In this document: positions 1-36,720 of the stretch, piece after piece
Layout of the letters: every line of letters begins with the position of its first letter
Numbering within the stretch: position 1 is the first letter of the stretch
From: Anthoceros angustus
Lineage: Eukaryota; Plantae; Anthocerotophyta
Direction: 5' to 3'
Assembly: GCA_010909165.1 (NCBI GenBank)
Contig: VJWM01000357.1
Location: forward strand, 1 to 41,346
DNA length: 41,346 nt
Notes under the pieces: model-generated
The model's database searches: none
The model's input: the letters and a program-made list of their open reading frames with translations, nothing else
Told to the model about the DNA's origin: nothing
Program-made: the position numbers and the translations under genes

Positions 1-32
1 GAGGTATATGGCATGTGCAACAGGAGAAGGAG

Positions 33-9548: not shown

Positions 9549-9630
9549 GTGCGGCGTCCAGGCAACGACACCGGATCCCATCAGACCTTGGGCCGGATCG
9601 ATCGGGATGGGTGACCAAGTCCTGTCGCAC
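9549..9630 (+). rRNA. 5S: 5S rRNA gene copy 7 (shortened)
   Basis: CACCGGATCCCATCAGA..CCTTGGGCCGGA..GGGATGGGTGACC then TTTTT. Confidence 0.75.
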
Positions 9631-10818: not shown

Positions 10819-11223
10819 TTTTTGGCACTCTACGCCCATGCCATGATACATCCGCCACGATCCGCACACCGCAATCCAACTTCATTCCACCTCATCAATA
10901 TATAGGCCAAACAAGTTTGGAGAAGATGGATTCCCATGGCATCACCATATTGCTAGGTAAATCCAAGAGGCATGCCATGAGGTAAAAGTAAAAGCATGGC
11001 GGACTCCCATATTAAGGTAATCAAGAGGCATGCCACGAGGGCACCACGATCTCCAAACGAAAACCTAATATTCCGTGAACAAAATCATACTTGGAAGTAA
11101 TTGTCGGCATGAAAAGGGCCACCATCCCTGCGACCGCGCGAAAGAGGGGCACCGTGATGGCGAGGCCGCGCGTGGAGGTGGAAGCAATGTGAGGTATATG
11201 GCATGTGCAACAGGAGAAGGAGC

Positions 11224-11310
11224 GTGCTCATAGTGGGCAACGACACCGGATCCCATCGAACTCACAAGCGCGGATCAAGATCGGGATGGGTGACCTCCCA
11301 AGTCCCGCAC
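11224..11310 (+). rRNA. 5S: 5S rRNA gene copy 8 (shortened)
   Basis: CACCGGATCCCATCGAACTC..GGGATGGGTGACCTCCCAAGTCC then TTTT. Confidence 0.75.
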
Positions 11311-12051
11311 TTTTCTATAAAAATTCTTTTATTTAAGTTACCACCTCATAATAGTTAAATTTCATTCTAGTCTCTATATATGTGTGTTATGAAAAATCCG
11401 TCTTAGTGGACTTAAAAAATTCTTCTTCTTCTTCTTCTCTTCTAGAGAGTTCTTTGCAAACTCTTTTCCCCTTTTCGGCTCCAATTTTATGCATGCTAAC
11501 AAGACAGAACAACGACAATTTACTTTATTTAAGTCCACTATGACGATGGCACTCATTTGATAGAGTTACACTATCATTATGACAATTAACCGCTATTCGA
11601 GTCTCGCTGAAACTAGTCTTGCACAATCAAATATCCGGCAGTTGAAAAGTTGAATATGTTGCCTCTTATTTTCACATTTGTTTCAACCTCCCGCAATAGG
11701 GCCGAAAAGAGCCCACCCCAAAGTGAAGACCAAGCCGAATAGATTGATAAACATCATGAATGATGAGGAACACAAAGTGTTTGGCCTCAACACCCTTGTT
11801 GCATAATCAATTTGACTCCTTTGCCGGCTTGGATGAGCCCATCGCCTCAAAGAGAGAGACCCAACACTAAGATGACCAAATCATCCTCATTAGTTTGAAA
11901 GACACATGGGTGCAAGATGAGAAAGCAGTGTTTCCTTGACTTGGAAACGATTAAAAACTGCTTGTGGTCTCAAGTGGGTAAGAGAGAGGAGACCATAGGA
12001 CAAATAGGTAGTCAACAACGGTAGGCAAATAGGTAGTCAACAGGTAGCTCA

Positions 12052-12503
12052 CCATACCACTCCAAACCCCAAACCAAACCAAACCCCCCAAACCAAACCA
12101 AACCCCAAACTCCCCAAACCAAACCAAACCAAACCAAACCAAACCAAACCAAACTAAACCAAATCAAACCAAACCAAACCCAACCAAACCAAACCAAACC
12201 AAACCAAACCAAACCAAACTAAACCAAACCAAACCAAACCAAACCAAACCAACCAAACCAAACCAAAAACCAAACCAAACCAAACCAAACTAAACCAAAC
12301 CAAACCAACAAACAAACCAAACCAAACTAAACCAAACCAAACCAAACCAAACCAAACCAAACCAAACCAAACCAAACCAACAAACAAACTAAACCAAACC
12401 AAACCAAACTAAACCAAACCAAACCAAACCAAACCAAACCAAACCAAACCAAACCAAACTAAACAAACCAACAAACCAAACCAAACCAAACCAAACCAAA
12501 CCC
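12052..12503 (+). repeat. (CCAAA)n tract, unit 8
   Basis: Direct reading. Confidence 0.95.
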
Positions 12504-12910
12504 TTGGCACCCACGGCTGGATACATCCACGATCCGCACACTGCAATCCAACTTCATTCCACCTCATCAATATATAGGCCAAACAAGTTTGAGAAGATGG
12601 ATTCCATGGCGATCACCATATTGCTAGGTAAATCCAAGAGGCATGCCATGAGGTAGTGCAGTCAAAAGCAGCATGGCGGACTCCATATTACAAGGTAAAT
12701 CAAGAGGCATGCCACGAGGGCACACGATCTCCAAACGAAAACCTAATATTCCATGAACAAAATCATACTTGGAAGTAATTGTCGCATGAAAAGGGCCACC
12801 ATCCCCTGCGACCGCCGCGAGAAAAGAGGGGCACCGTGACGTGCGAGCCGCGCGCGGTGTGGAGGGTGGAAGCAATGTGAGGTATATGGCATGTGCAACA
12901 GGAGAAGGAT

Positions 12911-13002
12911 GGCGCGGTCACCAGGGCAACGACACCGGATCCCATGAACTGCAGAAGCGCCTTGGGCCGGATCAGACATGGGACCTCTCCTGGTGCTGCA
13001 CC
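12911..13002 (+). rRNA. 5S: 5S rRNA gene copy 9
   Basis: GCGGTCACCAGGGC..CACCGGATCCCAT..AAGCGCCTTGGGCCGGA..TGGTGCTGCACCC then TTTT. Confidence 0.8.
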
Positions 13003-13635
13003 CTTTTCTATAAAAATTTTTTATTTTAAGCGCTCATAATAGCAGTTAAATTTCATTCTAGTCTCTATATATGTGTCGGATCCATGACAAAAACCGTCCT
13101 TAGTGGACTTAAATAAAATTCTTCTTCTTCTTCTTCTTCTAGAGAGAGTTCTTGCAAACTTCTTTCCCCTTTTCTCTCCAATTTTTATGCATGCTAACAA
13201 TCGTATAGAACAACCATACAATTTACTTTATTTTAAGTCCACTAAGGATTGATCATGGCACTCATTTGATGAGTTACACGCATTATGACAAATATTTAGT
13301 CTCGCTTGAAACTAGTCTTGAAGCACATCAAATATCAGGAAAAGTTGAATATTTCGCTCTTATTCCACATTTTCATCCTCCAATTGTGGAGAAAACCCAC
13401 CCCAAAGTGAAGACCATTTAAATAGAGACAAACATCATGAATACAGAGAAACTATCAACATTGTTAAGCAATTTGAGATAGATTTGATCAGACAGCAACA
13501 TAAGATGACAAAATCATCCTCATTAGCTTGAAAGACACTCTAAGAAAACTGTGTTTCTCATTTGAAAGCAAAACTATCTCGCATAAGAGAGAAAACTGAT
13601 CTGTAGTCAACAACTTCTTAGTCATGGATAGCTCA

Positions 13636-14110
13636 CCCCCCCAAACCAAACCAAACCAAACCCCCCCCAAACCAAACCCCCCCCAAACCAACCCCAAACC
13701 AAATAAACCAAACCACCCCAAACCCCAAACCCCCCAAACCAAACCAAACCAAACCCCAAACCAAACCAAACCCCAAACCCCAAACCAAATAAACCAAACC
13801 AAACCAAACCAAACCAAACCAAACCAAATAAACCAAATAAACCAAACCAAACCAAACCAAACCAAACCAACCAAACCAAACCAAACCAAACCAAACCAAA
13901 CCAACCAAATAAACCAAACCAAACCAAACCAAACCAAACCAAACCAAACCAAACCAAACCAAACCAACCAAACCAAACCAAACCAAACCAAACCAAACCA
14001 AACCAAACCAAACCAAACCAAACCAAACCAAACCAAACCAAACCAAACCAAACCAAACTAAACCAAACCAAACCAAACCAAACCAAACCAAACCAAACCA
14101 AACCAAACCC
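13636..14110 (+). repeat. (CCAAA)n tract, unit 9
   Basis: Direct reading. Confidence 0.95.
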
Positions 14111-14509
14111 TTTTTGGTTCTCGCCTAAGTGCCATGATACATCCGCCACGATCCGCATAATTAATCCAACTTCATTCCACCTCATCAATATATAGGCCAA
14201 ACAAGTTTGAGAAGATGGATTCCATGGCATCACCATATTGCTAGGTAAATCCAAGAGGCATGCCATGAGGTAGTGCAGTCAAAAGCAGCATGGGACTCAT
14301 ATTACAAGGTAATCAAGAGGCATGCCACGAGGGCACCGCTGATCTCCAAACGAAAACCTAATATTCCTGAACAAAATCATACTTGGAAGTAATTGTCGCA
14401 TGAAAAGGGCCACCATCCCTGCGACCGCCGGAAAAGAGGGGCACCGTGACGCGAGGGGTGTGGAGGGTGGAAGCAATGTGAGGTATATGGCATGTGCAAC
14501 AGGAGAAGG

Positions 14510-14614
14510 AGCGGCCATGCTGGGGCAACGACACCGGATCCCATCGAACTCCGCAGTAAGCCTTGGGCCGGATCAAGATCGGATGGGTGACCTCCGGAAG
14601 TCCTGGTGCTGCAC
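14510..14614 (+). rRNA. 5S: 5S rRNA gene copy 10
   Basis: CACCGGATCCCATCGAACTCCGCAGTAAG..GGATGGGTGACCTCCGGAAGTCCTGGTGCTGCAC then TTTT. Confidence 0.88.
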
Positions 14615-15415
14615 TTTTCTATAAAATTCCTTTTATTTTAAGCTACCTCATAATAGCGCAAATTTCATTCTAGTCTCTATATATGTGTCGGATCATGACA
14701 AAAATCCGTCCTTAGTGGACTTAAATAAAATTCTTCTTCTTCTTCTTCTAGAGAGAGTTAAACTCTTCTTTCTCGTCTCCAATTTTATGCATGCTAACAA
14801 GCAGAACAACGACAATTTACTTTATTTAAGTCCACTAAGGACGGATTTCGCCATGGCACTCATTTGATAGAGTTACACTAAGGGCATTATGACAATTAAC
14901 CGCTATTCGAGTCTCGCTTGAAACTAGTGTGAAGCACAATCAAATATCCGGCAGTTGAAAAGTTGAATATGTTGCTCTTATTTCCCACATTTGTTTCAAG
15001 CAACCTCCGCAATAATAGGGTGAAAAGAGAAAACCCACCCCAAAGTGAAGACCAAGTCGTAAATAGATTGATAAACATCATGAATGGGATGAGGAACACA
15101 AAGTGTTCTTCGCCTCAACACCCTTGTTGCATAACTGCAAATTCTGGACTTTTCGGCTTTGGATGTAGCCATCTATCGCCTCAATCGAGACTTGAGACCC
15201 AACACGAAGATGACCCGTAATCATCCTCATTAGGCTTGAAAGACACATGGGTGCTAAGATAGAGAGGAAGCATGTGTCCAGACTTGGAAACGATGCGAAA
15301 ACCTTTGTAGGTCTTCACTTAGTGGGTAAGGGAGAGAGAGGAGACTGTATAGGACAAATAGGTAGTCAACAACAAAGGTAGGCAAATAGGTAGTCAAATA
15401 GGTAGGCATAGCTCA

Positions 15416-15603
15416 CCAAACCAAACCAAACCAAACCAAACCAAACCAAACCAAACCAAACCAAACCAAACCAAACCAAACCAAACCAAACCAAACCAAA
15501 CTAAACCAAACCAAACCAAACCAAACCAAACCAAACCAAACCAAACCAAACCAAACCAAACCAAACCAAACCAAACCAAACCAAACCAAACCAAACTAAA
15601 CCC
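15416..15603 (+). repeat. (CCAAA)n tract, unit 10 (shortest, nearly pure)
   Basis: Direct reading. Confidence 0.97.
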
Positions 15604-16026
15604 TTTTTGGCACTCTACGGCCTCGCTAAGTGCCATGATACATCCGCCACGATCCGCACCCGCAATCCAACTTCATTCCACCTCATCAATATATAGGCCA
15701 AACAAGTTTGGAGAAGATGGATTCCATGGCATCACCATATTGCTAGGTAAATCCAAGAGGCATGCCATGAGGTAGTGCAGCAGCATGGCGACTTATATTA
15801 CAAGGTAATCAAGAGGCATGCCACGAGGGCACCGCTGATCTCCAAACGAAAACCTAATATTCCAAAGGAACAAAATCATACTTGGAAGTAATTGTCGCAT
15901 GAAAAGGGCCACCATCCTGCGACCGCCCGCGCGAGAAAAGAGGGGCACCGTGACGTGCGAGGGCCGCGCGCGTGTGGAGGGTGGAAGCAATGTGAGGTAT
16001 ATGGCATGTGCAACAGGAGAAGGAGC

Positions 16027-16133
16027 GTGGCGCGGTCCCCAGGGCAACGACACCGGATCCCATCAGAACTGCAGTTAAGCGCCCTTGGGCCGGATCAAGA
16101 TCGATGGGTGACCTCCGGAAGTCCTGGTGCACC
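16027..16133 (+). rRNA. 5S: 5S rRNA gene copy 11
   Basis: CCAGGGCAACGACACCGGATCCCATCAGAACT-GCAGTTAAGCGCCCTTGGGCCGGA..GGGTGACCTCCGGAAGTCCTGGTG. Confidence 0.9.
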
Positions 16134-16212
16134 TTTTCTATAAAATTCCTTTTATTTTAAGCTACGCCAGCCTCATAATAGCAGTTAAATTTCATTCTAG
16201 TCTCTATATATG

Positions 16213-16424
16213 TGTCGGATCAGTGCCATGACAAAAATCCGTCCTTAGTGGACTTAAATAAAATTCTTCTTCTTCTTCTTCTTCTTCTAGAGAGAGTTCT
16301 TTGCAAACTCTTCTTTCCCCTTTTCGGTCTCCAATTTTATGCATGCTAACAAATATAGAACAACGACAATTTACTTTATTTAAGTCCACTAAGGACGGAT
16401 TTCCGTCATGGCACTCATTTGATA
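16213..16424. repeat. Spacer foldback: ~41-bp inverted repeat (extendable to ~50 bp) around a 112-nt (CTT)n-containing loop; example from unit 11, present in all units
   Basis: Left arm 16222-16262 AGTGCCATGAC-AA-AAATCCGTCCTTAGTGGACTTAAATAAA is the reverse complement of right arm 16375-16415, with 2 mismatches. Confidence 0.92.
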
Positions 16425-16969
16425 GAGTTACACTAAGGGCATTATGACAATTAACCGCTATTCGAGTCTCGCTTGAAACTAGTGTGAAGCACAATCAAAT
16501 ATCCGTGTTGAAAAGTTGAATATGTTGCGCTCTTATTTCCACATTTGTTTCAAGCAACCTCGCAATAATAGGGTGAAAAGAGAAAAACCCACCCCAAAGT
16601 GAAGACCAAGTCGTAAATAGATTGATAAACATCATGAATGGGACGGAGGAACACAAAGTGTTCTTGATCTCAACACCCTTGTTGCATAACTGCAAATTGG
16701 ACTCCTTTTGCGGCTTTGGATGTAGCCATCTATCGCCTCAATCCGGCGGTGAGACCCAACACGAAGATGACCCGTAATCATCCTCATTAGGCTTGAAAGA
16801 CACATGGGTGCTAAGATAGAGAGGAAGCTGTGTTTCCCGGACTTGGAAACGATGCAAAAACTGCTTGTAGGTCTTCACAGTGGGTAAGGGAGAGAGGAGA
16901 CCGGTATAGGACAAATAGGTAGTCAACAACGGTAGGCAAATAGGTAGTCAAATAGGTAGGCATAGCTCA

Positions 16970-17479
16970 CCAAACCAAACCAAACCCCAAACCAAACCAA
17001 ACCAAATAAACCAAATAAACCCCAAACCAAATAAACCAAACCAAACCAAACCAAACCCCCTAAACCAAACCCCAAACCAAACCAACCAAACCCCAAACCA
17101 ACCAAACCAAACCAAACCACCAAACTAAACCAAACCAAACCAAACCAAACCAAACCAAACCAAACCAAACCAAACCAAACCAACCAAACCAAACCAAACC
17201 AAACCAAACTAAACCAAACCAAACCAAACCAAACCAAATAAACCAAACTAAACCAAACCAAACCAAACTAAACCAAACCAAACCAAACCAAACCAAACCA
17301 AACCAAACCAAACCAACCAAACCAAACCAAACTAAACCAAACCAAACCAAACCAAACCAAACCAAACCAAACCAAACCAAACCAAACCAAACCAAACCAA
17401 ACCAAACCAAACCAAACCAAACTAAACCAAACCAAACCAAACCAAACCAAACCAAACCAAACCAAACCAAACTAAACCC
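16970..17479 (+). repeat. (CCAAA)n tract, unit 11 (longest)
   Basis: Direct reading. Confidence 0.97.
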
Positions 17480-17865
17480 TTTTTGGCACTCTACGGCCTC
17501 GCCCAAGTGCCATGATACATCCGCCACGATCCGCACACCGCAATCCAACTTCATTCCACCTCATCAATATATAGGCCAAACAAGTTTGGAGAAGATGGAT
17601 TCCATGGCGTATCACCATATTGCTAGGTAAATCCAAGAGGCATGCCATGAGGTAGTCAAAAGAAGCATGACTCCCATATTACAAGGTAAATCAAGAGGCA
17701 TGCCACGAGGCACCGATCTCCAAACGAAAACCTAATATTCCATGAACAAAATCATACTTGGAAGTAATTGTCGCATGAAAAGGGCCACCATCCCCTCACA
17801 TCACCGAGAAAAGAGGGGCACCGTGACGTGCGAGGCCGCGCGTGGAGGGTGGAAGCAATGTGAGG

Positions 17866-17870
17866 TATAT
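17866..17870 (+). promoter_or_regulatory. TATA-like element about -29 from the 5S start (example; present in most units)
   Basis: GGTATATGGC lies ~29 nt upstream of the 5S start, matching the known upstream TATA of plant 5S genes. Confidence 0.75.
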
Positions 17871-17893
17871 GGCATGTGCAACAGGAGAAGGAG

Positions 17894-18003
17894 CCAGCGG
17901 TACCGGGCAACGACACCGGATCCCATCAGAACTGCAGTTAAGCGCCCTTGGGCCGGATCAGTACTGGGATGGGTGACCTCCGGGAAGTCCTGGTGCTGCA
18001 CCC
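17894..18003 (+). rRNA. 5S: 5S rRNA gene copy 12 (best preserved)
   Basis: CACCGGATCCCATCAGAACTGCAGTTAAGCGCCCTTGGGCCGGATCAGTACTGGGATGGGTGACCTCCGGGAAGTCCTGGTGCTGCACCC aligns nearly position-for-position with plant 5S, including box A and box C. Confidence 0.93.
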
Positions 18004-18007
18004 TTTT
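18004..18007 (+). terminator. Pol III oligo-T terminator after 5S (example)
   Basis: TTTT directly follows GCACCC, with further T runs ~15-25 nt downstream; seen in most units. Confidence 0.75.
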
Positions 18008-18761
18008 CTATAAAATTCCTTTTATTTTAAGCTACGCCAGCCTCATAATAGCAGTTAAATTTCATTCTAGTCTCTATATATGTGTCGGATCGCCATGAAA
18101 AATCCGTCCTTAGTGGACTTAAATAAAATTCTTCTTCTTCTTCTTCTTCTAGAGAGAGTTCTTTGCAAACTCTTCTTTCCCCTTTTCGTCTCCAATTTTA
18201 TGCATGCTAACAATCGCATAGAACAACGACAATTTACTTTATTTTAAGTCCACTAAGGACGGATTCCATGGCACTCATTTGATAGAGTTACACGGGCATT
18301 ATGACAATTAACCGCTATTCAGTCTCGCTTGAAACTAGTGCCGAAGCACAATCAAATATCCGCAGTTGAAAAGTTGAATATGTTGCTTATTTCCCACATT
18401 TGTTTCAAGCAACCTCCGCAATAATAGGGTCGAAAAGAGAAAACCCACCCCAAAGTGAAGACCAAGTCGTAAATAGATTGATAAACATCATGAATGGGAT
18501 TGAGGAACACAAAGTGTTCTTCGCCTCAACACCCTTGTTGCATAACTGCAAATTGGACTCCTTTTGGCTTTGGATGTAGCCATCTATCGCCTCAATCGAG
18601 TGAGACCCAACACGAAGATGACCCGTAATCATCCTCATTAGGCTTGAAAGACACATGCGAAGATAGAGAGGAAGCACTCGCGATCAACCTACCCACTAGT
18701 GGGTGGAGAAAAGACTTACAAATTGAAACTGGCTGTGTCAGTGGATCTCATCTCCTAAACT

Positions 18762-19136
18762 CCCCCCCCCCAAACCAAACCAAACCAATCCAACCCCCTC
18801 CAAACCAAACCAAACCAAACCAAACCAAACCAATCCAAACCAAACCAAACCAAACCAATCCAAACCAAACCAAATAAAATAAATCCAAACCAAACCAAAC
18901 TCAAACCAAATAAACCAGTACCAAACCAACCAAACCAATCCAAACCAAACCAAACCAAACCAAACCAAACCAAAAACCAAACCAAACCAACCAAACCAAA
19001 CCAAACCAAACCAAACCAAACCAACCAAACCAAACTAAACAACAAACCAAACCAAACAACAAACCAAACTAAACCAAACCAAACCAAACCAAACCAAACC
19101 AAATAAACCAAACCAAACCAAACTAAACCAAACCCC
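18762..19136 (+). repeat. (CCAAA)n tract, unit 12
   Basis: Direct reading; many variant pentamers. Confidence 0.95.
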
Positions 19137-20399
19137 TTTTTTGGCACTCTACGGCCTCTATGCCATGATACATCCGCCACGATCCGCACACCGCAATCCA
19201 ACTTCATTCCACCTCATCAATATATAGGCCAAACAAGTTTGGAGAAGATGGATTCCATGGCGTACTACCATATTGCTAGGTAAATCCAAGAGGCATGCCA
19301 TGAGGTAGTGCAAAAGCAGCATGGCGGACTTATATTACAAGGTAATCAAGAGGCATGCCACGAGGGCACCGCTGATCTCCAAACGAAAAACCTAATATTC
19401 CAGTGAACAAAATCATACTTGGAAGTAATTGTCGTGCATGAAAAAGGGCCACCATCCCCTGCGACCGCCCGCGCGCGCTACGGCGAAGGCTAAGGCTAAG
19501 GCTTTGTATATATGCTTCTAAGTCATGGACACCCATCCCAGGTATGATTGGAGACAAGGACGCTTAACCTCGACGTTCTCTTGCGTTCGTGGATAGCTGC
19601 ACTATTGTGGTACCCTGGTGAGGGAAAGAAGTTTGCTGTATTTGTAACACTTCTTCATTAACGTCGACGCCCACAGAGCCAATGGCTCAATCGTAAGTTT
19701 CTTACGCCTTTGTGCATAATCGCGTTTCATCCATTAGCACGAATTGCGTCGTCAGATTTATGATTCACGATCAAGGGAGTCCCAAGTGGTGATCTCTAAT
19801 ATCCATCTATGGGGTATAGCCGACACGACGCCAGCTGAGTGAGAGCCTGCTTGTCTCATAAGAACTCAGAAGTGAGTGACCGCTTCAGAGCCTGGGGTGC
19901 CCCCAATATCAAGTGGAAGACGAGAACGTGCTACACATCTATGCACTCAACAAAATAGTCAGCGACCTGATTCTCGTAGGAAGAAACTCGCTACACCTCA
20001 AGTTCCCCGGAAGGGAATCACTCTCTGCAAACAGAAACGTTGACAGTTACCAGTTGCGGGACGAAAAGGACAGCATTGCCATGCAAACAAGGGACGTGGT
20101 AAGATGTGGCATTCCACAGAAACGAACAGAGTCAAAACCAAAAACACGCGAGGCGATGACTCAGATTATGGGTGGTGATCTATTAGAATTGTCGGCACGG
20201 GTTCAAGGACAATCATGAGCTGGAGAGAGAGGAAAGAGAACGGGAATGGGAAGGATGCCCCGGGTGACCGGCGAGGTGAACTATCGAATTGAGGTCGTGT
20301 GTGAACTTTGCATCGGTTCGTATGGCTTCTGCTTGGCGTGGCCCTGGAGAGGCATTCCATGAGGTTGACGTATCCTTGGCAAGTCATTCCACGTTTGCT

Positions 20400-21990
20400 C
20401 CCTGCATATATGCTGGGATGTAAGCACGGTTTTACTTTCATAGGTCAGTACGATGCTGCGTTACCTGGCGCAGGTGTTTCAGGGAAACACGTGTCGTTTA
20501 GATGTGCCATCTTGGAATGCCATGTTCTTGGGGTACCACCAGATAAAGTTATGGTGAGGAGGCTGCTGCTGTTCTGGTCAAGGATGCAAGACAAGGGTCA
20601 AGGGTGCAAGACATGGGTCAAGGATGCAAGAGAAGGGTCAAGTTCCGAATGAGACAACATGTGCTGGTGAGATCCACCGACGCAGATGTTAGTCACAACA
20701 AAACTTGGATGTGATTTGTAGGAAGGAAACACGCTTGTGGATGCGTATGCAAAATGTGGGGACCTCCAGGAATGAGTCAAATGCTTGAATACTTGCCTCT
20801 CAAAAATACTGTGGTCCCGGGGCACACCATGATCTTGGGGTATACCTCCCATATCCACAAGGCTGAACAGGAAGTCTGCTCCTGTACTCACAGATGCAGC
20901 AGGAAGGTGTGGTCCCGAGTTACCGCACATATGCTGGTGTCCTTAAAGCTTGCCGTAGCCTGGCAGCATGGGGTGGGCGAAATGGTGGGCCTGCACTTGG
21001 AACAAGTGTGAGAGAGCAATGCCTGCGGACTGTGAAAGCTGTCCATTCGGATGTTGTGAAGGGTAAGTGCAAGTCGGACGTGTTTGTGGCCAACATGCTT
21101 GTGGATGCATACTCAAAGTGTGGAAGTGTAGAAGATGCTAGACAGGTGTTTGATAACATGCCTGTCCGTAGATGTGGGGATGGGTTGACGTTCCTCCAAA
21201 TCCGAACAGAGCTTGCCTGATGGTACTAGCTTTCGCAGGCCTCAGATCCGGAAGGTGCGTAACGGCTGGAACCGTTAGCAAGCTGTGACACAGGGGGCAA
21301 GCGTGGCGCCAGGTGGCCAGATATTTGTGCCAACCCTGCTATCGATTTCGTCCATGGTTCGGTGGATATGTATGCAAGTTTGGCAGCTTAGAAGACGCTC
21401 GAAGAGTATTTGAAGGACTTGATTAAAGATGAGGTGACTTGGAGTGCTGTAATCTCGGGGTATTCCCTGCAGGGCATGGGCCAGGAAGTCTTCTCTGTAC
21501 AGGGCTATGCAATTTAAGGACTTCCTGGTCCGCACCCAAATGTGGGGCATTTGTTTGCGTTCTGCAGGTATGTTCACGTGTGAGCTCTCCTTCTTTGGAG
21601 ATGGGGAAACAGGTTCACACGAGTCACAGAACGAGGCGTTGCATCATCCTGATGTGTGTTTTGGACAACAGTTTGGTAGATATGTATGCGAAGTGTGGAA
21701 GCTTGGAACTTGCAGAGAGAGTGTTTCACAAGAAGAGGGCATCGCTGTACCCAACTCCATGATTTTTGTATGCCTCCTGCAGGCATGTTCAGATGTTTCA
21801 GCTTTGGTAAGGGAGCTACCTGCACGCATAGAAGAAATAGGCCTTAAATGTTTTGCTCGTTGGCAGTCTAAAAGACATGTATGGGAAGTAGGGGAGCATG
21901 TGTGATGCACAGCTGGTGTTTGAGGCATTGCCTGATGTGCCCTGGAACGCCCTCATTGCAGGAAACAGCGTCTAAGGAGACAACCAAGAC
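20400..21990 (+). pseudogene. PLS-class pentatricopeptide repeat (PPR) pseudogene or frameshifted gene
   Basis: Typical motifs spread over several frames with stops: SWNAMFLGY, GNTLVDAYAKCGDL, MQQEGVVPSYRTYAGVLKAC, VFVANMLVDAYSKCGSVEDARQVFDNM, VTWSAVISGY, NSLVDMYAKCGSLELAERVF, PWNALIAG. Confidence 0.9.
20576..20642 (+). repeat. 20-bp tandem repeat x3.3 (GGTCAAGGATGCAAGACAAG) inside the PPR remnant
   Basis: Direct reading; unit length is not a multiple of 3. Confidence 0.85.
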
Positions 21991-22833: not shown

Positions 22834-23912
22834 CTAACTGGGATCCGTAATGAACTTGAAGATGACATGTGTCCAGGAAGTGTGGTGAATCAAATGGTCG
22901 TAAAATTCAGGGGCAATTTGGCGCACCCTGTGGAGCCTGCAGCCGGGGATTCTGGGAAAATCGTGGTGCTCGTTGTGGTAGCCAACATTCCAAGCCAGGA
23001 TGTTTAGAGGCCCGTAGTAGGAATACGTCTCCTGGCCATGGGCAACCACATAGTGCTCGGATATGAAGTGGCCGGCAATAGGATGCATTCCGCTTCCAAA
23101 GAACGTGGACAGCATGAGATACACGAGGGACCGCCACCCGGAGTAGTAGAGCAACCAGACGTCGAAAGCCAGCTGCGTACACAGGTTGGCCGCCTCCCCC
23201 GGTCTCTTCGGGTTCAAGAAGAGCGCCCGCGAGCCGTACACAAGAATCTGGAGGTTTACCCACAGCACCTTCATGAGCACGTTGCTCACCATCCTGCCCT
23301 CGGCGTAGCTCGGGATATCCATATCCTGGCCTTCGATCCCTGTGTATCTGTGATGCTCCAGATGGTACTTTTGGAACGTGACCGCAATTGGGATGCCGAT
23401 GGGAAAGTTGGCAAGCAGTGCTAGCACTCGGTTGCCTAAGGGAGTCACAAACGCCAGATTGTGGCTCAATTCGTGTATTCCAAGAAACAGGTTGTGGTTC
23501 AGAAACGCTCCGAACATGTAAGCTAGGGCAATCAACGCGGGCCAGCTCGCGTTTTGGCAGGCAATCGCAGTCCATACTTGCAGAAGAAACACAGCCAGGA
23601 TCTGCGCAAACCGGACTCCAGCAGTATCAATTTAGATCCGTGCCGTTTGATACGAAAATTGAACCATTTCGTGGAGTCATGCAACCGCTCCAAGCCCTTA
23701 TTAGTTCTCAAGCACAATCAGCATGCACAGAGTTGGAATCCAACCGAGTGGAGGATTTAAGCCCAGGTCGTCACCTGCGGACAAGTCCAGGGGTCCGGGC
23801 CGAAGAGCTCCTTGATCTCAGGGTGCGCAGCCAGAATCTGCTTGCGCCTGGAGGCATGCGGCTCATCGGTCTCAGTCCAGAGGAAATCGTCGCTCGCTGG
23901 CTGAAACACCAT
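22834..23912 (-). CDS. DES1: Sphingolipid delta-4 desaturase (DES1/DEGS-like); exon 1 23912-23775, GT-AG intron 23774-23602, exon 2 23601-22834
   Basis: Exon 1 gives [46 protein letters not shown] (Lipid_DES-type N-terminus). It splices in frame to [10 protein letters not shown]. His boxes HELSH, HLEHH and HNEHH and the motif [10 protein letters not shown] are present. The C-terminus looks frameshifted (see findings). Confidence 0.95.
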
Positions 23913-25257: not shown

Positions 25258-25500
25258 ACCCGAGATGACTGCCACATTAGCATGTGTGCCTTAAGTGCCA
25301 TGATGATACATACATTTAACATACATCTTTTCCTCCTCACCCTTGGCAGCAAGTGTGTACCCTGTTCGACTCCTAGTTTCTGACCCAAGATGACTGCCAC
25401 ATTAGCATGTATGCCTTAAGTGCCATGATGATACATACATTGAACATACGTCTTTTCCTCCTCACCCTTGGCAGCAAGTGTAATTGCTACTCCTAGTTTC
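25258..25500. repeat. ~125-bp direct tandem duplication
   Basis: GATGACTGCCACATTAGCATG..CACCCTTGGCAGCAAGTGT..CTCCTAGTTTC starts at 25264 and again at 25389. Confidence 0.92.
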
Positions 25501-26557
25501 GCTTCCCACCCGATCGTCACTCCCACCCCAAGCCGTACCCTGTTTCAAGCTCAGGCAAAATGCGCGTAGCACTCGAGGCTTAGAGATCAGACGCTCATTT
25601 CATGGCTGACATGCAAGCTACTCTTTCTGTTATGGCTATGACTCCTGCCCTCAGAGATGCACTTGACATTATTGGTCAGGGTTTTTGCTTTCACTTGAAA
25701 TCTGCTAGAAAGGCACTCTCATGTTGAACTACTTGCCTTGGAGGAGGAGGTTAACACAATGATCGAACATATTCTTGTCATGGTTGAGCCAATGAATGGC
25801 TTGTTATTTTCTTTGATCTCTTCAGAAGAATTGACACCAAGATCTTTTGTAGGTCTACAGCAAGGAATATGGTACATTAAACCGGGTGCTCCTGGATGCT
25901 GATCTATTTATGAGCAATATGTCATAGTGGATGACCAACCATGGTTTAAGAACATCACGAGGTTTGCTCCTGCTACATTTATCTACATTTGTGGGCAAGT
26001 TCATGATGAGCTACAATCCACTTCAGTGCCAGGTTTCTCTCAAATTGTTAGAGAATTCTTCTAGTCCGTGAACAAGTGGCTGTAGCTCTTCGTCGGATGG
26101 CCTATGGGGATTCGTTTAAATCTCTAGGTGAACAGTTTGGGATTGGCTTTGCCGCTGCATTCAAGTGCAGCCGATGGTTCACAGTGGTACTTCTCAAGTG
26201 TGCTGGGCACCACCTTCAGTGGCGCAATTTAGCTCAGCAGCAGTCCATAAAGCAAGGATTCCATGATCAATAAGGCTTCTCCAATTCCTTGGGTGCTATT
26301 GATGCAACCCATTATTCTATAGAAACACCAGTTGGCGAAGAAAAATTCGTTTGGTATGGTTAAGGTTTGACCATGGCAATGCAAGCTATTGTGGGTCCAA
26401 ATAAACGCTTTCTTGATGTCGTAACAGGTTGGCCTAGTAAAGCCAATGACACAAGAATTTTGGTGAATCCGTTTTCTACAGAGCAGTAGTGGCAGGCACT
26501 CGCTTAAATGGGCTCAAGGAAAACATTCTCGGATATGAAGTGGAGGAATATATATTG

Positions 26558-28974
26558 AACACGATAATTTTTGAAGGGGGGGATATACTGACCCCCTTCG
26601 GCCGAGACAGCACCCCCTTGTCACGAAGAACACCTTACCTAGAACAGCATATGTGCCCTACTTTGATAATGCACACACCTTTCTCGAGGTCATATCTTTG
26701 ATAAAAGATGCACTTCAAGTCTACCCGAGAACCGGAGCATGAGGGTGTGGCTTATGCTTTAGTAGAATGCATAGAGGGCGCCATTTTCATATGTTTATTA
26801 CAACCGAAAACTTTTACTTTCAAGTGGTGAACACAATGAACACAATCCTGCATTAGCGGGAGTCTCATTTAAGTGGTCGTGAGAACATTGCAACAAACAA
26901 TCAAGAAGGAGGAAGTGGTCATCAAGATCGGCTAATAGCCATTCAAGAGTGCGGCCCGGCGACTCATCCATGCCTTGCGCAAAATCGTCAAGTACCACCG
27001 CCATATTCGAGGCGGTCCATATCCTCCGCCTCGTTGTCGCTCTCCTCCATTGCTTGCTCGCCTTCAATAGTATCATTCTTGGGCCTCACGACGGTGTCGA
27101 TCCGCCACAAAAGATCTAGGGTCTCCGACCTCATCCAAAAGGTCGCCCGTGGTCTTCAACCTTCCGCACTCAATGCAACCACTTGGGCTTTAAGGCAATG
27201 CCAACGTCCTTAAAATGAACAAAGTTAGTTGCCCATGCGCCCATGCAAGCATCCTTAAAATCAACAAAATTGAACTATTGAGGAGGCACGAGGTTTGAAC
27301 ACGAAACCTATTCGTTACTACACTTATTTCCCAAACACTAGACCAACAGTCCATGGTTGAGTTACTCTTGAGGCGCTAAATATTTATTTTGAAGACAGGA
27401 GGAGGGGCGGGCCGGCCGGCCCATGGGTAGGGGCAGGTGTTAGGGGAGGGGCGCTGGCCGGCCGGCGCCATGGGCAAGGCATGGCGTGTTGGGGGGCGCC
27501 ACGGCCGGCCCAAGGCGCAGTGGGGGCGCCGGCCGCGCCATGGGGTGGTGTGCTAGGGGAGGGGCGCGGCCGGCCGGCGCCATGGGGTGTGTTAGGGGAG
27601 GACGCCGGCCGCCCCATGGGCGTGGTGTAGGGAGGGGCGCCCCGGCGCCAGGGCAGGCGGTATGGTTAGGGCGGGCCGCCCATGGGTAGGTGTGTTAGGG
27701 GAGGCGCCTGCCGGCCGCCCATGGGCGTGTGGGGGAGGGGCGCGGCCGGCCGGCGCCATGAGAGTGTGGGGGAGGCGGCCTCGGCGCCTTAGCACCATCC
27801 TGCATACGGTGAAGCTAGGGGGACAAGAAGGAACGGCAGTATCCTATCACCGATGGAAGGTGTGGCCCATTTGCGAGAAGGGTTAAAAGATTTGCATCCA
27901 TAGGTGACTGAAGAGTATAAGTGGTGGGAAGCCCGTGGACCGGAAGGAGATTGCTATCGCTAGTGGAGAATAACATTGGGCTAGTGCTACACCCTTGGAA
28001 GTGGTTTTCACGTGCAAGTGGATCATACACCGACCACTTCAAGTGCGGATGAAGCTTTGCTAGATGAGGCATTATTGAGGGACCTCCACCGCGTGATATG
28101 TATTTGGGGGCATATCAAAATGCGGGAAGGCAACCGCGGAAATGGCAGATGAATGGGGACATAACGGAACCGAGAGGGATGTTTCCGCAAAGGCTGCAAT
28201 ACGGACATGCATACAGCCATTCGGATTGGGAGGTCATTGACGTGAAGCTAAACGCACCACGACCTCACTTTCTTATCCACTAGTATCGGACCGAGCACAT
28301 AGATGCGTATGAAGGGAGATATGTGCGGAACACATAGTCCGGTGGTAACCCATCGGTCCAATCTTGGAAAAAGGGAATAAGATCCATTACCTAAAAACAT
28401 CTGGAGGTATTTGTGAAGTCATCACATATTATGGGTTTGTGTTGAGCAGCGGAAACATCATGTCACGGTGGACAAAAAGCGATAAGGGATAAGCTCTGCG
28501 AAGTTTTACAACTGCGGTGAAAGTGTCGCTGAAGATAGTGATGACAATGGAGGAGAAGGCTGGACCAAGTGATGACGATGGATTGAACTACGGGGATGAG
28601 TGGCGAAATCTCGTTTTCCGGGGTCCCGAGTTAATGTTGTAAGTCCAGTTCTTGATGTTTACGTGTTAGGAAATACCACGTCGTGGCTTTTGTGGTGTCA
28701 TAACAAAACCACATTTCCATCCCAAAGCGAGTTCTGATCGTTCTTGCCCGGCGAGAAGCGGCCTTCCTCCGTTCCTACTTTGCATTATTTCCCTAGGTTG
28801 GAGTTTGCGACCACCATTGGCCACAAACATTGCTAGATGGAAGTAGTAATTTTTGGGTGACACCTTTTTTTTGTTTTCGAATGCCTTCAAAATGCATTTT
28901 AGGGCCCATCAAAACCCCTTTGATTATTTGCGGGCCCTTCGAGATTATTAACCCCCTTCAAAAATTATCGTGTT
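26558..28974. mobile_element. 2,417-bp TIR DNA transposon (non-autonomous or decayed), 23-bp perfect TIRs, 4-bp TSD ATTG; superfamily unassigned
   Basis: AACACGATAATTTTTGAAGGGGG (26558-26580) and its exact reverse complement (28952-28974) are flanked by ATTG at 26554-26557 and 28975-28978. Removing the element and one TSD restores GAA TAT ATA TTG GGA GAT GTA GGG = EYILGDVG in frame. Confidence 0.93.
27398..27790 (+). repeat. GC-rich degenerate minisatellite (~35-40 bp unit, about 10 copies)
   Basis: Recurrent GTGTTAGGGGAGGGGCGCGGCCGGCCGGCGCCATGGG-like unit. Confidence 0.88.
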
Positions 28975-29544
28975 ATTGGGAGATGTAGGGTATCCGCTCA
29001 TGCCATAGTTGGTCGTGTCGATTGCAGGAATAGGTCTTTGTCAAATTGAAGAAAATTTCAACTACAAGCATTCTTCCACCCGAATGGTGGCCGAACATGC
29101 TTTTGGGGACTTAAAGGGACAATGACGTATATTGGGGAGGAAGACATGGAGGTGTAACTTAAGGTATTTGGCTAAACTGACATATGCTTGTTGCATATTA
29201 CACAACATAGGGATTGACAAAGGAGATCTTCCAGAGGAGTATCTTGTTCAAGATTATGTGCACCCACCGTATAGAACCGGTATGGAGAGACCACTTGGAG
29301 ATCCATCAGGACAAGCTATAGTAGAGGTGTTGAAGGCTTTTTTAAGTGCTTAGGCATGTTACATAATATTTTGTGACATGCTTGTAACAGAACCAGATAC
29401 ATTTCTAGTCAATGGAGGCAAGATTCTTGCCTGATGATTTAGTTGGGTTGCTCCCCAAGATTTAGTTTCAGTTCTTACCATTTCTAGGACTTTCTACAAG
29501 TGTCACACTCTACCATATCTACTTCTCTTTCTGATGTTGGTGGA

Positions 29545-30466
29545 GGATTGCCTATCCAAGTAATCTAATTCCATCACCAATTCCAACAAGGGCTTTAATG
29601 TATCCATGAAGCTCTTTAGAAATCTACTTTACGGGTCTCAGTCAACAACTCGAATTTGGTCTCGAATGCTAAGCTCTAGTGCGTAACAATTTCCCTCGTT
29701 ACATCCATACTAGCAGAAGGAGGTTGTTATTTTTCTCCCGCGAGACAATACCTTGTGGCTTGACGATATTCTTGTTCCATCTTATACCCGGAGGTTTGAA
29801 AGTGAGATTGCTTCTTGAGAAGCGAGGTTGAAGCACAATTGTTCCCCACCTTGATTAAAGCCGAGTTGGACTTGGTTGTGGGAATAAGTCATGTCATTAC
29901 CACCACCTACAATTTAATAATAAGCACACGCCTTATGAAAAAAACCAGACTTGAAACCAATAGCCAGGAGTGGATGGAAGACCTGAAGCTTAAGAAACCC
30001 TCACTGGAAACATTAGGCTTAGTCATGGGGAAGCTTTGGCGGACTGTGGAGTCCATGAGTAGATCTTCTGGATCAATATCCTTTCCTTCTGGCAACCTTC
30101 ATAACCTGCGGTTATAAACGGAAGTATAGAAATTTGTTGGCAGTCTCTTGTACCTCTTGTCTTAAATGGAGAGGTCTCAATACGAACTCTTCCCAGAGCC
30201 AAGGTGTCGCTCGTGATCGAATATCTTCTTCCAATCTATATGCAGGGATTCCCACTTGTCTTGACACTCCTTTGCTGTGCGTTTGATATTCCTCTTCTGT
30301 ATATCTGTAACAATCTTGGCCCAACGTAGCCAGCTTTATGTTTTTCCTTGTTCCCTCCAGATAACATTCTTTGCAGGTCATCTCTTTGTTCAGTTTGGAG
30401 AACCAATATTTCAGCTTCAGTCCACAAGACCCGTTTCCTTAAAGGCTCCTCAAAGACGAGACTCAT
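29545..30466 (-). pseudogene. Myb/SANT (trihelix-like) DNA-binding ORF of the Harbinger element, decayed
   Basis: MSLVFEEPLRKRVLWTEAEILVL, then after a frameshift RWAKIVTDIQKRNIKRTAKECQDKWESLHIDWKKIFDHE. It is convergent to the transposase, matching the known two-ORF PIF/Harbinger layout. The 3' limit is approximate. Confidence 0.8.
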
Positions 30467-31249
30467 TTTACAACTTGGGATGGAATGCTGGATGGCACCT
30501 CAAAAAGGTTTGACGTGGGCCGAGGCAGGTTGTGAATGGGCTTGGCACGGGCTTAATCTAGGTTCGCATAAACCCGAAACTGGATAAGAAAAGCTGATGT
30601 GACGAAAGAGACAAAACTCAAACATGCTGAAATGAGTAAATGAACCGTTTTCGAGTCGGGGAGTGTGGAAGACCACATGTGCACTAACCCCGCTCCCAAG
30701 TGTCAGGATGAACGATTTTTTTTTGTTTTGGATGTGTTAGAATAGCAAAGTGCTTTGAGAATCGTCGAGTCGGTCTTTTATCTGAATGGTCCTTGGCCCT
30801 TGGAGATAATAATAATTTTTCGATCCTTAGGTTTGACCCGGAGGTGGGAAGAAATAAGTCCTTGGGTATTGGGAATTTTAGAATAAAAGGTGTCTATATA
30901 TGCTAGGGATGCTCACAATATGCCAGTTGAGTAGTCAAGTGGGGTGGTGGCTAGTTCCACCACGGTGGCAGCAGACGTCTGAGACGAGGGAGTTTACAAC
31001 CCTAGTGGCGGAGGCGGGACTACGATCGGTCGGGCGCATGGCGGGAGAAGGGCACCCGGCACGCGGTCGCGACTTTCGGGAGGGCGTCGGGCGGGCTGCG
31101 GCAAGAAGGCGCGCCTGGCCACCAAATCTGCATCTCGGCGGGAGGAAGGAGCGAGAGCAGGCGGCGGAGGAAATCGCGCGAGGCGTGGAAGGAGGCAGCG
31201 GCGTCTGATTTTTGACAGTCTGCGGGGTCGAGGTTTTGTTTTGGGAAAC

Positions 31250-32950
31250 AACGAGAGAAGGAGATGGCGCCCAGTGCCGAAATCACCTGCGGTGGACATG
31301 GACCCTTTGGAAAGTGAGGTGGCGGCTGGTGCGCTGGGCACAAGTTCATGGAGAAGAAATGGTGTTCTGACGATGCATTGGTGCAAGAGTCGCCCGGCAA
31401 CCAGTCGCAAGAGGGTGGCCGAGGAAAAGGCAGCAGGCGGGATTTGGCCCTCTTTCGGCGGTGTATGGGCGAGCATCGGAAGATGGGAGCTTGGTGATTG
31501 ACCCCGTGAAGAAGACCTTGAGAGGCTGCGGACGCTCATGAAGCACAGGGAAGTGAGTGAACAATGGTGGGTGACTCGCCAACTCGTGTCTGCTTGTTGG
31601 TGGGATTAGCCAAATGGATTTTGTGTTTCCTCTGAGCCTGGATCATATGGCGGATCACTTCTTGGTTTTTCTTCACGAGGTGGTCAAGGGTACACAAATT
31701 GATTGGGGAAGGATGATTTTGAAAGAGCCCGTGAGGAGAAGGCGACTTACTCTCCTTCCCTCGGCCCTCCTTGATTTCACCTTTTCCGATTCATGTATTT
31801 GCATTCCGGTGTTTAACTGAGTTGAAGTCGTGTCCGCCCGCATGGTTGGAAGCCGGCCGTGAACTCAAGGTAGAAGAGGAGGAATTTAAGGAGGATTCTG
31901 CAAGGATTCCAAAGCTTGGGGATGCGCCTCGAAGGTCTAAGAGGGTGGGGAAGTTTCCAAGGGTAAGAAGAAGGGCTACGACGAATCGAAAAAAGGGGAG
32001 GACACCAAGCAGAGGAGGAACCCACAGCCACACCTGTGGTCACTGTGTCAAGACTAGCAGAACGCTGTAAAGGAGGGAAAATAAAGGGAAAGTTGCTCCT
32101 CCTGTGATGAACGCCGCCGCTAGGGGAGAATGGAGCGGGAAGAGGCAAGGCATCAACCCCAGGAGAGGAGGGGTTAACTTCAGCCAAGACCGCAACGGAG
32201 CTCCGGATATTTTTGGCGACATTTCACCGAACCGTCTACCGAGGTGGGGATAGGAGACACCGCCGACACGAGAATTGTTGTGGAGGCGGATGGGCAAAGG
32301 GACAGCCCAATTTGGGGATTTGGTTTGACTTCGCCATGGCTCGACGCAGCGGATCTCCTCGATCAAGCCCATGGCTCTCACCGGCCGAGTGTGCAAGGCC
32401 AGGAGAAGTTGCTCAAGGAGAAGTTGGAAAGCCCGGAAGGCGAGAGCAAGGCGGCCGAGGAGCGCAGACGGAGTGCGGCGGCCTTATGCAAGGCATGAGG
32501 AGCTTAAGGGACATGTCCACTCAACAGAGGCCTTAGTAAATCAGTCAAGGGGCGATGCTACAATTGAAGAGCTTCAAGATGAGGTCTCATGAGTCCAGAG
32601 CTGTGGAAGCGATGGCGCCTTGGAGAAATTCAAGAAGTGAGAGATACAAGCGGAAAGAGACGAGGGCCAGAGTCAAGAGAGAGGTGGCCAAACCGAAGAA
32701 AGGCCGAGCGACAGCCACCGCAGGAGCCGAAGCAACCACCGTGGGGGAAGTAACCACCACGGTGGCTAAACCAGCCACCGTCGTGGAACGTGGAACTGAG
32801 GTGGGGGAAGTCACCGACAGGAGTGTCGCAGATGGAGGGACAGATCTCCTGGAGAATCAACAGCAGCCGGCCCAGGATTGTCCACGGGAGGAGAGGGTAA
32901 GGACCTCTGTATCAGAAGGGCGTATGGGTAGATGCATGGTTTGGTGCTCA
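31250..32950 (+). pseudogene. Decayed ORF resembling retroelement accessory (non gag-pol) proteins
   Basis: Coding-like fragments FLHEVVKGTQIDWGRMILKE, LISPFPIHVF and a charged coiled-coil (EKLLKEKLESPEGESKAAEERRR). The resemblance to Gypsy/Tat accessory ORFs is from memory only; no LTR, PBS or pol was seen. Confidence 0.35.
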
Positions 32951-33190
32951 CTTTGGTGCGTAACGGTTGAAACATCCTTCTTTTGTCCTCTTATATTGAA
33001 TATAATTTTATATAATTGATTTCGTTTCCAAACGGTCTAGTATTTTTATTGATGATAGTATTCTTATGTATGTATCTGAGGTTAAAATATGAAATTAGAT
33101 TAGGAAAAAGACCTTGAAAAAATGCCTTAGTCCGGGATGCTAAGACGGCAATGTCCTCGACACTTGTCCATTGTGCCATGTTATTTTACT

Positions 33191-33899: not shown

Positions 33900-36720
33900 C
33901 GGGAGCGTGGAATGCTCACTTCGTGTGAAAGAGGGTGGCTCGAAATTGGTCAACATTTCTTGCATCTCACTTCTAGATACACCTCTGCGAGCAAACAAGA
34001 CATCTTGGCGCTCTTTGGCCGGCTGCCACTGTTGAAAGAGTATCGGGCTGAGACTGCAAAGACCGCAAGGATAGCGAGGTGGCGCAATGATCATGCGAAC
34101 TTGAAGGTTGCATGCTCAAGTTTGAAGTGCAATTTGGAGACCATTTGCCGGAACACGCTCTTCAACATGATTCGTCTAAAGATATCAAAGGAGCCACCTT
34201 GTTTTCCTCGTCTCGCCAAATAGAGTCAGGAGGCATCAGACGAGCCTTGGGTTCTCCAAGGAGATGCATGGTGAAATATCTCGGTGTGGTGTGTAGGAAG
34301 ACACGGAGGACATGCAGCAGTGGTATGTGAAAGACGAATTGTTCGTTTTGGGAACTCGCCCGACCATCATCAAACACCAAGGACACAAAGTTCGAATCGC
34401 CCAAAGTGTTCATCACACATATCACTCATTTCGATATGTCTCAGTTTGTCTGTGATATGTCCGATTCTATTGATTTGCTATCAATCACTTTTCCCCTTGC
34501 AAGGCCGTGTTAAGGTAATCGATGTTCAAAGATGTTGTTCCACAATGCTCTTGGGGTGCATGTTGGGCATGATTTGCGTTAATGCATCTCAAGTTTTGGT
34601 TCCTCCCTCCTGTCACCGCCATTCAAGACTTTTTGTCGCACCCTTTGGTCACCCTCGACTCGGGCCTCTTGGCATCCAGCCTCCCAAGACACAGGGTCAC
34701 GGTGGTGGACATGTGCAATGACAGTGCCCACCACGTGTGGACACTTGCTTGGTCCCGCATGGTGTCATGGTCACCTCAAATGTAACATGGTGACTACCGG
34801 CAATTTTATGTGACTCTATGGTCTTGTTGTAATCACATGGCCACGACATCGGTATATTCGACAGTGCTACTTGTCCCGATGGTCATGCACGTAGGTGGCC
34901 AGCTGCTCGTCCGGAGTGGGCTTGGGGTCATGTCCTTGGGATACGTGGTAGGGTCACTTTCCTATGACCCATCGCCCACTGGGAATATACAAGCAAGCTC
35001 GACACAAGTCGTTGTGGTGTCTGCATGAGTTCTATCTCCGCTTTTGTCGAGCACGACGTCCATGTTGGGCAAAGGACATTTGAGAAGTTGAAGCCTTTTA
35101 CGTGAAGAGTTTGGTGAACGTAATCTTTGCTGTAGATATCACGAGATGGCATTTTAAAGGATGCTTTGAATGGCCGCGGGTTCGCCTGTGATTCACTCGT
35201 GGCCATTGCCTTTGTTCCTGATGGTATGTGCTATCGAGCCACCAAGCCTTCCATGTATGCCCACTCGCGCAATGCTGAGGGAGCTATGTGAGCGTTGTGT
35301 CCCCGGATGAAGCTGGCATGCCCTTGCATGCCTGCAGGGGGCTTGTGACAGATGTGGGATTCCCAAGCTTTTGTTCTGTCCATCGAGACCTCAGAGATTC
35401 AACCACAAGTTCTTGTTGTTTCCGATGTGGTTGGTCGAGACGATGGGAATGATAAGAAACGTATCAAGCTTGTGTTCATGGAAACACACCCCTCGTTTGT
35501 GTTTCACTTCAAGGTAAAGCTCAAGGAGTTTGTGCCATGATTTTGTGCAACGTGGCAAGGGATAGAGTTCGCAATTTGGAATGGTTTCCACAAGACAAAG
35601 TTGTTTCGCTCATGGACTTCTCCTAACTATGCATTTGGTGTCCGTAATGAGATACACTATGCAATCGCAAAATGATCGGTGTATCAATCTTCGTGTTGGT
35701 GTTCTACCACATAGCTCGGATGCATGATCCCCTGCATCCATCGAGAAATACTACCATTTTACATTAGTGATGATCTTGTTCATGACACGCTGTTTGTGCA
35801 ACATTGCTTGCTCAAGCACCGCAATGGATGCGGATGGTTTCGACCGGGAACATTGGTGTCGGATGCCAAGCCTTGCCAAGCTATTCGCTACCCAAGCCTC
35901 ATGGGTGTAACATGCCCGTCATACTTTGGGAGTGGCCATGGGAAGGGGAGCACGATGGTGCGGATCTTGAAGCGATCACACGGCTGGAGTCATCTCCGAA
36001 GCTAAGCGAATGCGGATGTTGTGGAGGTCCGCAACTACCCGGCAGAAGTTCATATGCCTCAGCATGGGGTGCATGTTTTTGGTTAATTGGCAAAACATGA
36101 AAACAGGAGGGCCAAGCATGGTTGTGATCCTATTCTCGGTTCCAAGACAATGCATGCCACAGTAGCATGGACCCAACGCAAGCTGATGCGGCACCGCATG
36201 CTTTTGTGTTGGCTTAGAGAGCAACCATTCAAGTGGAGGCCCACACTCGCTGATGCCTGTGAGGATCAAACCTCATGCCTGAGCATTGGTCCTCACAGAA
36301 TTCAAATGCAATCACGCGAACATTGTTGGAGGATGCGGTCCTCCTTCCCTCCCGCTAATCTCGGAAAATGACATCGCCGACGTCTTGATGTGTCGACATG
36401 GCGATGTCCTCAAGTCGGGACAACTTCCTTGTACTTGCCGACCATGAAGATGAAGGTCGAGCTTTTACCTACTCATCAAATTTAAGCACACATTGCTTCA
36501 CGATTGCCCATGGTCTAATGTCACTTACAAAGCGGGGATTCGTGGTCGTGGTCCCATTACACTGCAAGAGGACTGTCACATGCGGATATGGACAACGGAC
36601 CGCATTCTCCAGCCCATATTGTTCGGACATGCAAGTTTGAAATGGAGGTGCAAGATGGTGATGACCTTTTGTTTGTGCTCACAAAGAGGCCTCTGTGAAA
36701 GGTGTTGTGCAAGAAAGTGT
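33900..36720 (+). pseudogene. Decayed large DDD transposase, Sola-like (probably Sola2-type)
   Basis: Collinear fragments across frames: SFWE..RPSSNTKDT; GQRTFEKLKPF(Y)VK..RYHE; ACLQGACDRCG; KRIKLVFMETHP; VVSLMDFS*NYAFGVRNEI; FYISDDLVHDTLFVQHCLL; VSDA; YFGSGHGKG/EHDGA; DNFLVLA..KFEM. The subtype is recalled from motifs, not searched. Confidence 0.7.

Follow-up and report, generated by a model that had tools for sequence, protein, structure and literature searches.

What kind of mobile element interrupts a transposase gene in contig VJWM01000357.1 of the hornwort Anthoceros angustus, and what kind of transposase would have moved it? We analysed a stretch of 41,346 nt of this contig, referred to below as the window, in which a 2,417-bp insertion splits a decayed PIF/Harbinger transposase gene. 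The insertion is a non-autonomous transposon with perfect terminal inverted repeats (TIRs) and a 4-bp target-site duplication (TSD), and its ends and TSD length make it a probable member of the Sola superfamily, most likely of the Sola1 type. The features that delimit it are as follows:

26554-26557, no strand: left TSD copy, ATTG, read directly, with the same letters as 28975-28978
26558-26580, plus strand: left TIR, AACACGATAATTTTTGAAGGGGG, complementary to 28952-28974 at 23 of 23 positions
26558-28974, no strand: 2,417-bp body of the non-autonomous element, with no gene, no Pfam or Rfam match and no similarity to the rest of the window
28952-28974, minus strand: right TIR, recognised by its complementarity to the left TIR and by the shuffle test
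28975-28978, no strand: right TSD copy, ATTG, read directly
25903-29350, plus strand: host, a decayed PIF/Harbinger transposase gene (DDE_Tnp_4), interrupted at 26557/28979, recognised by Pfam pieces and the rejoined frame

Ends of the insertion and the interrupted host gene

Alignment of both element ends paired the two TIR arms at 23/23 positions, with the complementarity ending exactly at nucleotide 23. At up to three mismatches, the 23-mer occurs at only two sites in the window, and in 100 dinucleotide-preserving shuffles it was never matched. An earlier note on this DNA had described perfect 23-bp TIRs and an ATTG duplication, and direct reading, the complete pairing and the shuffle test all bear this out. 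With the ends taken as fixed, the chance of a 4-nt match between the flanks is 1/256. A direct repeat of 8-11 bp was also looked for in the flanks, and none is present.

Rejoined without the element and one ATTG, the host reads ...EEYILGDVGYPL in one frame, which is the exact restoration of a host motif that the earlier note had claimed; in-silico deletion of 26558-28978 likewise yields a single frame, ...LGYEVEEYILGDVGYPLMP*. We take the LGD.GYP motif to carry the second catalytic Asp of the PIF/Harbinger transposase family. Two DDE_Tnp_4 pieces lie collinearly around the insertion, 26364-26486 corresponding to profile positions 29-61 and 29009-29122 to positions 102-129, and the ~40 profile positions between them are filled by ~45 residues spanning the junction. 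Both pieces score under the Pfam gathering cut-off because each is short (~40 aa). Their placement on both sides of the element agrees with the claimed nesting in a Harbinger transposase, a gene that now carries several stops and frameshifts. The remnant of a second host gene was also detected:

30180-30335, minus strand: Myb/SANT-like DNA-binding protein (Pfam Myb_DNA-bind_4, E 1.5e-6; the score of 29 bits exceeds the cut-off, 27)

Together, the DDE_Tnp_4 pieces and this remnant identify the host, from its domain matches, as a decayed two-gene PIF/Harbinger element; its terminal inverted ends were searched for and not found. Because the insertion is nested within the Harbinger gene, it must be the younger of the two, and nesting suffices for this conclusion. 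The relative age had previously been read from the intact TIRs. The order of events stands, by virtue of the nesting, but absolute age can hardly be judged from the intact ends, because only 27 bp are compared. Just upstream of the Harbinger remnant, a tandem duplication at 25258-25481 comprises two 99-nt copies, 96% alike and spaced 125 bp.

The element has no coding capacity, its longest stop-free frame being 118 aa. Fifteen interior pieces searched against Pfam at E<=1 gave chance-level matches only (E 0.06-0.3, far under the curated cut-offs), an Rfam search of the element region at E<=1 returned no match, and blastn of the whole element against the remaining window DNA revealed no similarity. 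Repeated motifs within the body, including copies of the element's own end motifs, are located as follows:

26592-26598 and 26613-26619, minus strand: two subterminal occurrences of AAGGGGG, the inner TIR motif, in inverted orientation, found by motif search of the window
27387-27394, plus strand: TTTTGAAG, a TIR motif, repeated in the interior, with a mirror copy at 28885-28892 on the minus strand
~27400-27780, no strand: GC-rich tandem array with units of ~37-42 bp and the core GGCCGGCC/CCATGG (TRF rows at 27527-27777; repeat families D2-D5 and D14)

AAGGGGG occurs at four sites in the window, namely both TIRs and the two subterminal copies, for a shuffle expectation of 9.2. All four TTTTGAAG sites (4/4) fall within the element, in both TIRs and at the two internal positions, plus-oriented in its left half and minus-oriented in its right half. 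This layout is that expected of subterminal transposase-binding repeats, and the motifs may have served in this way. From the lack of a gene and of Pfam or Rfam matches, and from the subterminal repeats of its own end motifs, we identify the 2,417-bp element as a non-autonomous TIR transposon. The GC content across 27-28 kb of the window is 0.60. A tRNA-like reading of 27275-27350 was unsupported by ARAGORN and Rfam.

Superfamily assignment and competing explanations

According to a review of plant transposable elements, a DDD transposase, TSDs of 4 bp, highly variable termini and TIRs of 11-1124 bp characterise Sola elements (PMC10741241). They mostly measure 2-9 kb or more, and they occur in the moss Physcomitrella (P. 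patens) and are uncommon in flowering plants (PMC10741241; also PMC9033089). The curated Ectocarpus library contains an autonomous element, Sola1-1_Ec32, whose termini are AACCG-CGGTT, whose TSD measures 4 bp and which has the moss element Sola1-1_PPa as its top blastp match; the termini of Sola2-1_Ec32 differ, being GGCGG-CCGCC (PMC12477816 Suppl. 3). Gene-less elements are assigned provisionally in that library via terminal motif and TSD (PMC12477816). The same practice, applied here, leads to the Sola1 type: judged by sequence, the AAC...GTT ends and the 4-bp duplication match the described Sola1 group, and the find is ordinary if uncommon. We consider it probable that the element is a non-autonomous DNA transposon of the Sola superfamily, with Sola1 as its most likely type. 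The earlier note had found no group that cleanly fits AAC ends combined with a 4-bp TSD other than TTAA, a view that does not hold given the ends and TSD of Sola1-1_Ec32 and the variability of Sola termini. Its other suggestion, a non-autonomous partner of Sola-like transposases, is the one that we judge most likely on TSD, termini and literature.

[quoted passage not shown] When the TIR was aligned to this end with free end gaps, its score was reached by 549 of 20,000 shuffles (p ~0.03, uncorrected), a likeness that is suggestive only. Alignment to a second insect Sola1 end gave no signal.

Several observations weigh against the Sola1 assignment. The termini of the element and of Sola1-1_Ec32 are identical at the first three terminal bases only. 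The target ATTG fits neither AWWT, a preference called a Sola1 hallmark in insects (PMC3845634), nor the bias of Ectocarpus TSDs toward ending in A (PMC12477816 Suppl. 3); this mismatch is weak evidence, because it concerns a single site. Under the Repbase rule for gene-less elements, the TSD must be equal in length to that of a classified element and the termini must agree with it over positions 1-11 with at most one mismatch; compared with the insect Sola1_NA end, the terminal 11 nt could not be aligned. Two transposase remnants elsewhere in the window, at 35290-36002 and 34165-34425, have no DNA or ends in common with the element, and proximity is the sole link. A 5-bp TSD, TATTG, is formally possible, because a T precedes the left ATTG and a T is the final base of the right arm, and it would cost one unpaired terminal A. 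The earlier description of the boundaries and TSD length as well fixed thus stands for the ends and the 4-bp ATTG, while the 5-bp reading qualifies it as to length. Finally, because no autonomous copy with the termini of the element was seen, the Sola link rests on TSD length, the 3-nt terminal match and context.

Much of this would also be accommodated by a non-autonomous member of a TIR lineage undescribed at family or superfamily level, in which a non-Sola transposase coincidentally gave a 4-bp TSD and AAC ends. Such a lineage would agree with the outcome of our searches, in which no autonomous partner appeared in the metagenome, viral and prokaryote contig scans or in the protein collection. 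No second copy came to light in the window: only the element was hit by the TIR at three or fewer mismatches and by a 14-mer at two or fewer, and it was also the sole result when AAC..GTT pairs flanked by a 4-bp TSD were looked for. The TIR 20-mer gave five single matches in metagenome contigs, attributable to chance, none with a full TIR, a partner arm or other similarity; the TIR 19-mer gave 0 matches in viral contigs and 19 unpaired matches, near chance expectation, in prokaryote metagenome-assembled genomes. A word search of the protein collection with a 92-aa open reading frame (ORF) of the element found nothing, and exact look-up of 10 window ORFs in that collection found none present. 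Pfam searches of ~45 further stop-free pieces (20.9-23.6 and 31-40.5 kb) returned a fatty-acid desaturase and PPR only, transposase, ParB and methyltransferase domains being absent, and a search for the motif [DNS]PP[YFWH] gave nothing convincing. The ATTG target off the AWWT preference, the mere three terminal bases shared with Sola1-1_Ec32 and the weakness of the likeness to the insect Sola1 TIR (p ~0.03, uncorrected) point in the same direction. However, each defining structural feature of the element, namely the non-TTAA 4-bp TSD, the AAC...GTT ends and the occurrence in a non-seed plant, fits a described group, and we regard an undescribed lineage as unlikely.

The length of the duplication alone would also suit non-autonomous members of other short-TSD groups: reported ranges are 4-5 bp for Ginger1/2, 2-4 bp for CMC/Chapaev, ~4 bp for IS481EU, 0-4 bp for PHIS variants and 4-10 bp for MuDR-like elements. 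These ranges overlap at 4-5 bp, and the TSD distribution of a family cannot be fixed from one copy. The element resembles Ginger1, Ginger2 and IS481EU in being a TIR element with a 4-bp duplication (4-5 bp in Ginger2), and piggyBac/Kolobok in having a 4-bp duplication, but the terminal signatures of Ginger, IS481EU, CMC, piggyBac/Kolobok and PHIS are all absent from it, and we give membership in any of these groups a low probability. The termini of Ginger1, Ginger2 and IS481EU are TGT...ACA or TNT...AYA, and the target of Ginger2 is TATA, whereas the element has AAC...GTT. The piggyBac/Kolobok elements use an obligate TTAA target, with CC..GG termini in piggyBac, whereas the element has ATTG and AAC..GTT. 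In CMC (CACTA/Chapaev) elements the termini are CAC and the TSD measures 2-4 bp; here CAC begins at base 3, and the AA/TT outside it are inverted, not direct, and are therefore part of the TIR and not a CMC duplication. PIF/Harbinger (PHIS) elements have 3-bp TWA, ANT or CWG targets and GG or AG ends, and no TWA is found at the element junctions. hAT (8 bp), Mutator (9-11 bp) and Tc1/Mariner (TA) were rejected as well: the flanks repeat four (or five) bases only, and there is no TA at the junctions.

A more far-reaching proposal, which we consider quite doubtful, is that elements with AACAYGATAATTTT ends and a 4-bp TSD form the non-autonomous arm of a land-plant lineage apart from Repbase Sola1-3, with a remotely Sola-like transposase and maybe a ParB-methyltransferase gene. 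That the insertion is no transposon at all but a chance inverted repeat, break-repair filler DNA or an assembly artefact is highly improbable: its single copy within the window would agree with this, whereas a perfect 23-nt inverted repeat is absent from 100 shuffles, and a flanking 4-nt direct repeat with exact in-frame restoration of the host motif is the signature of transposition.

Neighbouring transposase remnants and other window features

Two further transposase remnants lie to the right of the element:

35290-36002, plus strand: remnant of a transposase gene with frameshifts, placed in a DUF7869-like family and separate from the element (homologues, motifs, tblastn, Atlas)
34165-34425, minus strand: possible, weak remnant of a Sola1-type catalytic core, by collinear resemblance judged by eye, 5.2 kb from the element

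For the gene at 35290-36002, a word search with a 96-aa piece (35715-36002) retrieved four short proteins, P0124-P0127; the homologues come from ENA, Logan and JGI data. Their alignment shows invariant YYISDD.HD.LFVQHC and FFGSGHGKG blocks, together with an SDGCAGQFK block whose counterpart in the window has decayed; P0125 additionally shows an upstream DFAENY..QSMHW. In a tblastn search against the window, P0125 matched 35619-35954 (E 2e-13), and in the Atlas it adjoins the DUF7869 cluster (score 0.93, 197/256 features). Pfam searches of the 35290-36002 pieces and of the homologous proteins gave no match; according to a 2017 publication, there were no Pfam models for the catalytic domains of Sola (PMC5751038). 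A large profile search with the 96-aa fragment returned only three spurious Cys-rich repeat proteins (zf-C4, CBM_14, DUF3473), a literature search for DUF7869 found no mention, and inverted ends for this transposase were searched for and not found.

The core of the Sola1-1_Ec32 transposase reads ...MMDGANQSNFVVP...VQVDNTVAENKNN...FMMVGHTHIQIDQIFS (PMC12477816 Suppl. 3) and differs from the DUF7869-like gene. The minus-strand piece at 34165-34425 reads LGDSNFVSLVFDDGRASSQNEQ...FTMHLLGEPKARLMPPDSIW, and by eye its LGD..VFDD..QNEQ..F.M..G..K..D.IW follows the same order as LGD..VQVDN..ENKNN..FMMVGHTH..IDQIFS of Sola1-1_Ec32; Pfam gave no match to this piece. It may be what the earlier note meant by a Sola-like transposase ~5 kb away. 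As regards that claim, a transposase is indeed present, in decayed form, at 35290-36002; the placement obtained for it is DUF7869-like only, and no sequence link to the element emerged.

The rest of the window holds several unrelated features. Three 5S rRNA genes lie on the plus strand within window positions 1-19400 (14507-14617, 16034-16134 and 17890-18004); their spacers are long and full of AAACC/AAACT pentanucleotide arrays, giving an unusually long 5S unit of ~1.5-1.9 kb. One or more decayed or intron-split PPR genes occupy 20700-21900, with Pfam PPR_2/PPR matches at 20867-21217 and LVDMYAKCG present three times. A sphingolipid delta-4 desaturase (DES1) is represented by an exon that looks intact, at 22837-23631 on the minus strand (FA_desaturase, E 5e-23); it matches a Logan protein best (74%), followed by Sphagnum (69-71%) and Diphasiastrum (70%), and the protein collection thus contains no close relative of the source organism. 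We take the PPR gene and these desaturase matches to indicate a land plant outside the seed plants. The region 31000-33000 is GC-rich (0.56), with long overlapping open frames in several frames and no Pfam match, and looks non-coding.

Proposed mobilisation and comparison with known systems

If the Sola1-type assignment is correct, the element, which carries no gene, would depend for its movement on the DDD transposase of autonomous relatives acting in trans. Binding of this transposase to the 23-nt inverted ends, and to AAGGGGG and TTTTGAAG as repeated subterminal motifs, would lead to excision of the element and its reinsertion via a 4-bp staggered cut. The present copy inserted into the catalytic core of the older PIF/Harbinger transposase gene, just ahead of the conserved LGD.GYP motif, and repair of the staggered cut at that site would have produced the ATTG duplication.

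The insertion is cleanly delimited and its empty site can be reconstructed, which is of little importance alone. The copy pins down where members of a gene-less family end and how long their duplication is, which is useful for annotation: Sola is seldom annotated in plants, and such elements readily end up labelled "unknown TIR". From a collection of copies like this one, the ends and target preference of plant Sola1 could be derived, as could the identity of the autonomous elements that mobilise them, possibly carriers of a ParB-methyltransferase gene. Should a land-plant lineage distinct from Repbase Sola1-3 prove real, the present copy would be among the first delimited members of an undescribed group of plant DNA transposons.

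Among known systems, Sola1-1_Ec32 is reported to have a two-gene design, with a Sola-like transposase and a ParB-methyltransferase gene. The element differs from it in having no transposase gene, in size (2.4 kb vs 21.5 kb) and in TIR length (23 nt vs 282 nt). The insect Sola1 MITEs, at 250-700 bp and with AWWT/AWDT targets, also differ from the element, but share with it the absence of genes, the 4-bp TSD and ends with the pattern ACxxG..T.ATTTT.GAA.G.GG (PMC3845634). In common with Sola1, as represented by Sola1-1_Ec32 and Sola1-1_PPa, the element has a 4-bp non-TTAA TSD and AAC...GTT termini (AACAC-GTGTT here, AACCG-CGGTT in Sola1-1_Ec32), a TIR length within 11-1124 bp and an occurrence in non-seed plants.

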